This document shows positions 46,952-55,330 of a stretch of 64,000 nt of DNA, piece by piece. Both the position numbers and the translations under genes were made by a program. The stretch comes from Piromyces finnis finn (Eukaryota; Fungi; Neocallimastigomycota), in the NCBI GenBank assembly GCA_002104945.1, contig MCFH01000006.1, positions 682,001 to 746,000 on the forward strand, given 5' to 3'. Each line of letters opens with the position of its first letter. Position 1 is the first letter of the stretch. A model generated the notes under the pieces. It saw only the letters and a list, made by a program, of their open reading frames with translations, had not been told where the DNA came from and searched no databases.

Positions 46952-49630
46952 TTATTTTTCAAAAACTCCTTTATCAGGGAACAAATATTCCATAATTTCA
47001 TGTAATTCTTGGCTAACTCTTGGTTCATTGTAATCATCATTAAAATTAAAAAATAAATAAGGTTCTTTTATAATATCAGAATAAAGTTTAATATTTCTAG
47101 TAGCATCATCAAATATTTGCCCAAATCTCATTGTTTTTTCTCGTAAATGATCTTCCACTATATGAAAGCCGTATTTTAGTATAGTTCTATTTCTATTTAT
47201 GACTTTATTATTATAATCACCTGTTGCTTCTTCATCTAAATCGTGAATATATTTTGAAGAATAAAATTTATCAAATAATTCTTCAAATCCTTTTTTGGAA
47301 GCAGTATATCTTATAAAGGCTTGATTTGCAAAAGGTGGAATAACATCCTCTGGATGTCTAAATTTATGAGTGAGAGTAATATCAATATAATTCTTAAATT
47401 TTTCTCTACTCATTGGGAATAGATCACGATACCAAACGTATGGTGAATGCTCAAGTTGATTTGTCCTAATATATCTTCCATAAAGTGATTTAATAGCACC
47501 ATTTGTCATTGCAAGAGAAGCAACAAACCTTTCACTCATAGTAGTTTGTGAAAAAGATTTTCTACCAACATTTTTAGCATATTGAATATCATTAATAAGA
47601 AAATGAAGTGCTAAAAAAAAATTTGGGAACCTGAAGTGTTGTGCTGCATTTGGGAAAAATATTTCTTTATCTTTTGGTTTATATTCATATCTCTTTTTTT
47701 TAGAATGATTAAGTTCTTCCTCTTCTATTTCTTCTATATTTTCTTCCTTTTCTTTACTTTCAGACACGTTATTATCTTTATTATTATTTTTTATTCTTTC
47801 AATTTCAAAAATTGACTCTGTATTAATTTTTTCATCTTTTTTATCTTCATTAATAGAATTTAGAGTAGCAGAAGTGGCTTTTGTTGTTGTAGTGGTAGTG
47901 GTATTTGTTGATGCTTTATTTTCATTTGAATTATAATATTTATTTATTTCTATCAACGCTTTGGTTATACATCGCGAATGATGCATGTTAATAAACTCAT
48001 ATGGAGCTTTTGACTTTAAGTAAGCAAGTAATTCTTGTATACATGGGGAAAAATCACTAACTAAATGTTTATTGTTCAGATATTTATAATAAGTTAATTT
48101 AGAAGTCATTTTATATTGATCTGAATGTTTATAAAATTTGTAGTAGAAATAAGGAAAACTTTTCTTTAATTCCTGTTCTTTATTAAAATACATTATATAT
48201 TCCTCATCAATATCATAAGATTCACCGCTTCCATAGAAGAAATAAGAAGGATGAACAGGCTGATTAAAGAAATAATCGTCATTTAACTGTATAAATTGTT
48301 CTGTCAAACCTGGAATTCTATCTAAATACCATTCAATAGCAAATGAATTAAATGTTGGGTTAACATCATTACCATTCATATCTTTTTTTGGTAAGATATC
48401 TTCTTGATTAATGATTTTAATTCTATCAAACTCAGTATCTAACCATTCTGGTGTTTGTCCAGGAGTTACAATAAATATTGTACCTTTATGCCATGGTAAA
48501 TATTTGAAAAGAGAACGTAAAGAAAATCTTAATTCATCCACACTCCTATCCCGATTGTCTGCTTTTTTAATTCCACCATTATATTTAGCCTTTTGTTCCA
48601 AATGAATAGGATCTGAACCATTTACCCATGTATACACAATAGATATATCAGCTGCCCATTGCCATTCCGGTTCTAATTCATCATGTCTTACACCATTTTC
48701 AACATCTCTTGAATATTTTAATAAAAATCTTAATTCTCTTTCATCATCGTAACATACCCTTTTATTTTGTTTATCTTGCTCGGAATTTATAGATTGAATA
48801 GCATCAGCATAGAGTTTATTTTTTAAATTTTGATATTCTGTTCTATTACTCATATTATCTAATGAAGGTATTGGAAAGCTACCAAATTTTATATCTTTCC
48901 AAAATATTTTATTTGGATCATAGTATTCTTCTAAAAGTTTTTTTTTAGTTAAATTTTCATAAAATGGTTTCAAACTTCTAAATTCATTGGTATCATCTAC
49001 ACCATTATTAGGTACACTCTTTTCCTTTTGTTTGTTCTTAAGTTTTCCAATAAAATCCTTTTGTTTGTCAAAGAATTTCATTTCTCTATTCCTAAATGAT
49101 TCTTTATTATCTATTAATTTATGATTTAAATGCCCATTCTTTTCATTAAAAATATCTTCAATTCTCCCTACCTTACTTATTCTATTATTTGGAATATTTT
49201 CTTTTTTTTTTTTAATTTCACTTTTATCTATATTTTCAATCTTATCAGTATTTTTATTCTCTATTTTATTTTCAATTTCATCAGCATTTTTATGTTCTTT
49301 TAAACTTTCTAATATTGGTTCAGATTTATAATTATCACTATTATAAATATTTTTATTATCAATTAGCTTATCAATATCTACGTCGGTGTTTGCTATTTCA
49401 AATAATATTTCATCTTCAATTATATCTTTAAACATATATTGAAAGAAAAAAATTTTTTAATATTAGTGTTAAGTAAAAAAATATTATATAGAAACTAATA
49501 GTTTCTATATACGAAATTACATACCTTTTTTTTTTCTAATTTGAGATTGATGATGTGATAATGTTATTAAAAAAACATTTATTAATAATATAATAATAAT
49601 CACAGGTGTAAATTTTATATGTTTAAACAT
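46952..49630 (-). CDS. Stealth-family hexose-1-phosphate transferase with N-terminal signal anchor, 2 exons
   Basis: CR1 IVYTWVNGSDP; CR2 ELRFSLRS...GQTPEWL...PTFNSFAIE...IPGLTEQFIQLNDDYFF; CR3 HSPYVWYR...KFRHPED; CR4 FFNFNDD. Upstream exon 49525-49630 encodes MFKHIKFTPVIIIILLINVFLITLS and joins by a phase-1 GT-AG intron. Confidence 0.9.
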
Positions 49631-54680: not shown

Positions 54681-55098
54681 AAGAAAGTTTGGTTAAAAGC
54701 TTGTGTTTAGGGGTAAACAGACTTAATGAATTTAAATAATATTTTATAAAATAATCATAATTCTTTTGTTTTTTAAGCTTATTTATTTAATAAATGAATA
54801 AGCTGTAAAAGAATAAATTTTATTATATATTATTTAAAGGTCATTAAATAATAAAAATTTTTTTTAATTTTTATTTAACCCTTGGGAGGGTCTGAGAAAA
54901 ACCCGCAAAGTGTCCTTGAGGGACTTCGTATTAACAAATTCATAATTTATTATGAATGTATACGAGTGGATCACCAGAAAGCGAAAAATTGGAATAGGAT
55001 CTACGGGTGTAATGCTGGAAGTTCAATACGCAAGACATTTAATAATTTTTTATTATTAAATGAAACTCAATTCAGACTACTCTTTGACCAAATTTCTT
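54681..55098 (+). ncRNA. RPR1: Nuclear RNase P RNA
   Basis: CR-I GGGAGGGTCTGAG (54884-54896) and CR-V AACTCAATTCAGACTACTCT (55064-55083) closely match human H1 RNA (GGGAAGGUCUGAG; AACCCAAUUCAGACUACUCU). CR-IV AAGTTCAAT. Helices: P1 54681-54699/55082-55098, P2 CTTGTGTT/AATACGCAAG, P7 ACCCG/CGGGT, P8 GTCC/GGAC, P10/11 TGGATC/GATCTA, P19 CATTTAATAAT/ATTATTAAATG. Confidence 0.93.
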
Positions 55099-55330
55099 CA
55101 CAAAATTATTTAATTTAAAAATTATATAAGAAAATAAATATTTAATAAATAAATAAAAATTGAAATTATTGTATAAAAATAATTATTGATAACTAAATCA
55201 ATAATTATTGTTTATTATTAAATCAATAATTCTTTTGCAATTATTGATTTAATAATTATATTTAAGTAGTTTTATTACTTATGCAATATAAAATTATTTA
55301 CTTTTTTTTTTTTAAATAATAATGATAATA

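Follow-up and report, generated by a model that had tools for sequence, protein, structure and literature searches.

The window analysed here, a 64,000-nt stretch of the Piromyces finnis genome with a G+C content of 12–32 %, carries genes in the order NUDIX, RNase P RNA, SH3, Stealth, LSM and RSN1, whereby the neighbouring SH3, NUDIX and LSM genes are spliced. When the whole window was scanned with Rfam, a single family exceeded its threshold: RF00009, the nuclear RNase P RNA, matched positions 54840–55088 on the plus strand with 72.8 bits (E 8.6e-19; gathering score 28). The gene table of GCA_002104945.1 has no gene called at this locus. A 78-aa ORF (54882–55118, plus strand) extends through the RNA from CR-I and past the 3′ terminus. 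Its translation found no relatives in the protein collection searched, and the ORF merely results from the RNA gene.

Orthologues of the RNA gene were located by way of the genomic surroundings of Stealth orthologues, relying on conserved gene order. The Stealth-family (GlcNAc-1-phosphotransferase-like) gene of the window lies at 46952–49435 on the minus strand and encodes an 826-aa ORF, whose best relatives were found in Neocallimastix californiae, Piromyces sp. E2, Piromyces finnis and Anaeromyces robustus. The family is rich in paralogues in anaerobic gut fungi, with dozens of matches in Neocallimastix, Piromyces and Anaeromyces. The gene order of the window recurs in GCA_050613775.1 (Neocallimastix, L022), a genome in which one encoded protein is the same as that of an N. 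californiae entry, and in part in GCA_002157105.1 (Piromyces sp. E2, L021). At the syntenic place RF00009 reaches 75.8 bits in Neocallimastix and 74.5 bits in Piromyces sp. E2, so that the P. finnis locus and both orthologues score above the gathering threshold of the nuclear RNase P RNA family. Three further candidates gave no orthologue: the Stealth homologue of Anaeromyces robustus (P0022) is a non-syntenic paralogue, the JGI contig L029 with the closest Stealth relative ends short of the RNase P position, and the N. californiae contig L023 begins too near the Stealth gene. Using the terminal SH3 exon beside the gene as bait for neighbouring contigs yielded no candidate.

The Rfam match spans just 249 of the approximately 418 nt of the gene and starts too late. 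Positions 54681–54740, upstream of the match, are conserved across genera in the three-species alignment, and directly after the 5′ strand of P1/P2 the letters AAGCTT-GTGTTT-AGGGG reproduce the model consensus AAGCUC-aucgu-aggGG that leads into P3. The P1/P2 pairing, the AAGCTT motif and the outer P3 stem therefore place the gene at approximately 54681–55098. Its elements are as follows.

54681–55098, plus strand: nuclear RNase P RNA gene over its whole length of about 418 nt, delimited by the RF00009 match, P1/P2 pairing and cross-genus conservation
54681–54699, plus strand: 5′ strand of P1/P2, pairing with 55080–55098 (17 pairs in RNAalifold)
54709–54883, plus strand: expanded P3, about 175 nt; outer stem AGGGGT (54709–54714) with ACCCTT (54878–54883), assigned by eye and by homology to aggGG/CCccu of the model
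54884–54897, plus strand: CR-I, GGGAGGGTCTGAGA, 5′ strand of the P4 pseudoknot; consensus GGGAAGGUCUGAGA, high posterior probability, invariant in three species
54901–54904, plus strand: 5′ strand of P7, four pairs with 55005–55008
54912–54924, plus strand: P8 hairpin, from the covariance model and the folds; invariant in three species
54926–54965, plus strand: extended P9 hairpin, 40 nt against about 16 nt in the model, aligned as P9 with a 26-nt insertion
54966–54972, plus strand: 5′ strand of P10/11, GTGGATC, pairing with GATCTAC at 54998–55004 (seven pairs including one G-U)
54973–54980, plus strand: CR-II, ACCAGAAA, with AGAAA at 54976–54980; identical to the model consensus ACCAGAAA
54981–54989, plus strand: nine-nt linker in place of P12, GCGAAAAAT (as RNA GCGAAAAAU)
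54989–54994, plus strand: CR-III, TTGGAA, with TGGAA at 54990–54994; identical to the model consensus UUGGAA
55020–55027, plus strand: CR-IV, AGTTCAAT; consensus AGUgCAAU, invariant in three species
55036–55062, plus strand: 3′ hairpin between CR-IV and CR-V, eleven pairs
55065–55080, plus strand: CR-V, ACTCAATTCAGACTAC, 3′ strand of P4; consensus AACCCAAUUCAGACUAC, invariant in three species

At its ends the RNA is closed by P1/P2, where the 3′ segment CTCTTTGACCAAATTTC (55080–55096) pairs with GAAAGTTTGGTTAAAAG (54683–54699); in the three-species alignment (columns 3–19 with 478–494) this helix shows two two-sided changes, several one-sided changes and wobbles. Between the strands of the outer P3 stem lie about 165 nt, of which the proximal strand TAAACAGAC is conserved across genera (model counterpart ACaaACuGAG). 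The distal insert of 120–190 nt is AT-rich and variable, being 49–56 % identical among the three species. The P1 anchor and CR-I stand 191, 178 and 252 nt apart in the three species, and the expanded P3 of the orthologues lies at approximately 4150–3995 (L021) and 1230–1003 (L022), both on the minus strand. This insert is the reason why, in each of the three species, the first (5′) third of the gene is cut off or wrongly aligned by Rfam. Downstream of the 3′ strand of the RNA, at a distance of 10–25 nt, stands the 17-mer TATTTAATTTAAAAATT (55107–55123), which P. finnis, Piromyces sp. E2 and Neocallimastix share letter for letter within flanks that are otherwise about 57 % identical and which may be a 3′-end or termination signal.

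All five conserved regions, CR-I to CR-V, agree near letter for letter with the RF00009 consensus. GTCTGA in CR-I is complementary to TCAGAC in CR-V, so the P4 pseudoknot can form, and CR-IV is present as well. Identity as RNase MRP RNA (RF00030) was considered and rejected, as CR-II and CR-III are present and no RF00030 match stands at the locus after Rfam clan competition, which assigns it to RNaseP_nuc. Compensatory changes were found in four places of the three-species alignment. Besides P1/P2, these are P7, whose outer A-U pair is G-C in Neocallimastix (columns 290/398), the distal stem of P9 with one U-A to C-G change in Neocallimastix (columns 329/345), and the hairpin between CR-IV and CR-V, in which two pairs carry compensatory changes in Piromyces sp. 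E2 (columns 434/449 and 436/447). No K-turn is visible by eye in P9, the 5′ strand of which has no GA dinucleotide.

The element that is missing from this list is P12, which usually separates CR-II from CR-III. In human H1 RNA the P12 arm is roughly 100 nt long, and most eukaryotic RNase P RNAs possess one. The earlier note had observed that only 9 nt lie between CR-II and CR-III, enclosed by P10/11, and both its coordinates and its letters proved exact: the two motifs, CR-II of the form AGARA and CR-III of the form UGNNA, share one loop that is closed by the P10/11 helix, which is predicted by single-sequence folds as well as by the three-species consensus fold. Inspection by eye shows that no Watson-Crick helix is possible inside the nine-nt linker. 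The inference that P12 itself is absent is borne out by the RF00009 alignment, in which 68 consensus positions of P12 are skipped in favour of 3 nt. Both orthologue alignments read 'ACCAGAAAGCGAA [3] UUGGAA' with the same 68 positions skipped, and the three genomes have exactly the same 22-mer, ACCAGAAAGCGAAAAATTGGAA, running over CR-II, the linker and CR-III. P12 is thus lacking in the window and in two other species, and its natural absence from a fungal RNA, as the earlier note had proposed, is kept in at least three Neocallimastigomycota genomes of two genera. The description of the RNA as a naturally minimal specificity domain, in contrast, did not hold: with a P9 of 40 nt (roughly threefold the usual length), a P3 of about 175 nt and a total length of about 418 nt, the RNA is better called remodelled than minimal, because P9 and P3 are expanded.

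For an estimate of how unusual a nine-nt spacer is, metagenomes were scanned with the pattern GGGARGGTCTGAGA-N(50-80)-ACCAGAAA, which is independent of the length of P12 and whose CR-II part does not match human H1. Among the 20 loci obtained, Rfam recognised nuclear RNase P RNA in 17 (19 hits), and 17 of the hits reach CR-III. In these 17 environmental RNase P RNAs, which are taxonomically unassigned and have no gut-fungus relative among them, AGAAA and the CR-III pentamer stand 28–88 nt apart, as opposed to 9 nt in the gut fungus. Even the shortest comparator, L017 with a 28-nt spacer, still has a P12 stem of 6 bp. A short-spacer version of the pattern found no match in the bacterial and archaeal genome collection or in viral contigs. 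The scan also brought up a gene cluster and two cases of gene duplication. On the 2.45-kb metagenome contig L007, RNase MRP RNA, RNase P RNA and U1 snRNA stand side by side in a compact eukaryotic cluster recognised by Rfam (424–677, 1514–1822 and 2345–2451, all on the minus strand). L019 holds two diverged RNase P RNA copies in tandem (241–533 and 636–940, about 100 nt apart), and the 173-kb contig WLWD01001185.1 (L008 and L014) two copies of identical score and sequence.

A remnant of P12 could be seen in a 4-bp helix of CCAG (54974–54977) with UUGG (54989–54992) around an 11-nt loop, as these pairs are predicted in both the single-sequence and the consensus folds. The letters involved, however, are the conserved CR-II and CR-III motifs themselves, and the same complementarity occurs in RNAs with a full P12 such as L017 and L002. 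In solved holoenzymes CR-II and CR-III form T-loops and not a helix (PMC13184271, PMC8509007). The pairs are invariant in the three species and hence show no covariation; the same invariance leaves P8, P10/11 and the CR-II/CR-III region as a whole without a covariation signal. P12 begins after AGAAA, so that such a helix, even if formed, would have no homology to it. We consider a vestigial P12 of this kind very unlikely.

The second alternative is that the locus represents a decaying pseudogene, a retrocopy or an assembly collapse, while a working, P12-bearing gene resides elsewhere. In its favour, the Rfam score of 72.8 bits is well below the 100–180 bits typical of environmental RNase P RNAs, a deficit that arises because P12 is skipped and the expanded P3 is mis-aligned. 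Against it, three species, each assembled independently, share the layout at the syntenic place. Over the stretch CR-I to CR-V the RNA is 89–94 % identical between the genera, whereas the 300-nt flanks reach 55–60 % in the three genomes, a level that global alignment of such AT-rich DNA gives as background. This difference is a signature of selection, and together with the compensatory changes in four helices it argues against both an assembly artefact and a decaying pseudogene, making this explanation extremely improbable. Judged from the aligned sequences, the three genomes show the RNase P RNA to be under purifying selection. As Piromyces and Neocallimastix have the P12-less layout in common, the loss is older than their split.

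Almost certainly wrong, finally, is the proposal that the hairpin at 54926–54965 is the real P12 and that nothing is missing but a correct assignment of helices, an alternative fold which the earlier note itself had named as its refutation: the hairpin is indeed long for a P9 and adjoins P10/11, but P12 by definition lies between CR-II and CR-III inside P10/11, whereas this hairpin is located 5′ of both and outside 54966–54972/54998–55004, has no AGARA motif before it and, for each of the three species, is aligned as P9 by the covariance model with high posterior probability, so that the proposal fails on motif order and on the P9 alignment.

Taking these results together, the locus very probably harbours a functional nuclear RNase P RNA gene in which P12 was lost in evolution and replaced by a nine-nt single-stranded linker joining CR-II and CR-III, as far as sequence comparison can tell. 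Compared with the canonical RF00009 RNAs (human H1/RPPH1, yeast RPR1), the gut-fungus RNA has CR-I to CR-V, P4, P1/P2, the outer P3 stem with AAGCUY, P7, P8, P9 and P10/11 in the same order. It differs in the 9 nt that stand for more than 68 model positions at P12, in the expansion of P3 to about 175 nt and in that of P9 to 40 nt.

P12 counts as a universal element of eukaryotic RNase P RNA, and Table 3 of PMC2858038 lists it for every type E RNA of eukaryotes. In the literature searched, its natural absence is described only for Mycoplasma fermentans and the Thermoproteaceae (PMC2858038, PMC12974513); an equally short linker may nevertheless have been described for some protist. In a literature search combining RNase P RNA with gut fungi and chytrids, none of the listed papers uses the term 'RNase P RNA', and a search for a described lack of P12 gave only unrelated papers on p120-catenin. 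In M. fermentans, as cited in PMC2858038, P12 is likewise missing by nature and the remaining specificity domain is retained, which shows P12 to be dispensable in a working enzyme. That enzyme, however, consists of a bacterial RNA and a single small protein, whereas the gut-fungus RNA belongs to a protein-rich eukaryotic enzyme in which P12 usually docks an L7Ae-type subunit. The type T RNAs of the Thermoproteaceae (Pyrobaculum) also have a naturally reduced specificity domain (PMC2858038, PMC12974513), but there most of the domain is gone including CR-II and CR-III, while the gut-fungus RNA retains P7 to P11 and both T-loop motifs and misses only P12. The same tendency to reduce P12 is seen in L017 and in the RNase P RNAs of Giardia and the microsporidia with their small P3 and P12 regions (PMC1636426). 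The P12 of Giardia is nevertheless still a helix with a K-turn (PMC1636426), and a helix is also kept by the microsporidia and by L017, whereas the gut-fungus linker has none; moreover, P3 is small in Giardia and the microsporidia and enlarged in the gut fungus. RNase MRP RNA, which shares the related catalytic core with CR-I, CR-IV and CR-V, is without CR-II and CR-III and has a P12-type stem (PMC13184271), the gut-fungus RNA being the reverse. The elements that contact the substrate and form the active site are intact in the latter, as CR-I, CR-IV and CR-V with P4 are present together with the CR-II and CR-III pentamers and their flanking letters.

In the human enzyme, P12 is the K-turn docking site of Rpp38, and the Rpp21-Rpp29-Rpp38 'wrist' holds the substrate-recognition domain. 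CR-II and CR-III together make the T-loop structure that anchors the tRNA elbow (PMC8509007, PMC13184271), and they stack on the D- and T-loops of the tRNA (PMC8509007). P12 projects away from this module, and its K-turn is bound by L7Ae/Rpp38 in archaea and humans, while Pop3 of yeast acts by way of Rpr2, with no K-turn involved (PMC10966300). Pop4-Rpr2 protect P9 to P12 (PMC3326328). Both strands of P12 depart from the CR-II/CR-III module and return to it next to each other, and a short loop could therefore presumably close the module undisturbed. By analogy to L017 and the model consensus, GCG in the linker would correspond to the unpaired letters after AGAAA, AAAAA would take the place of the hairpin, and the U would be the one preceding UGGAA.

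Going by the structures of other species, the tRNA-elbow anchor of CR-II and CR-III would be expected to work with a module closed by a loop. It may then be held by the 'wrist' proteins Pop4-Rpr2 in place of P12 and its L7Ae-type partner Rpp38/Pop3, and, more speculatively, the enlarged P9 and P3 might offer a replacement protein-binding surface. What could result is a gut-fungus RNase P with a bare CR-II/CR-III anchor and no L7Ae-type docking helix, in which Pop3/Rpp38 is either gone (perhaps retained by RNase MRP only) or tethered through protein, and in which P9 or P3 take over scaffold roles; drawn from analogy, this picture is possible, yet we hold it to be rather doubtful.

The P12-less RNA is a variant of a well-known ribozyme family and not a new kind of system, and its recognition is useful for annotation. 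An RNA gene of such a layout is easily left unannotated, because standard models under-score and truncate it. In the comparison of three genomes from two genera, gut fungi keep the T-loop anchor and drop P12, which suggests that even a protein-rich RNase P of the eukaryotic type does not depend on this helix. Their RNA offers a natural template for minimal S-domain constructs, and the fate of Pop3/Rpp38 in gut fungi becomes a concrete prediction. If a bare-anchor RNase P were indeed at work in these organisms, it would amount to a natural experiment that defines the minimal eukaryotic S-domain, and it would show RNA and protein co-evolving in the reverse direction.
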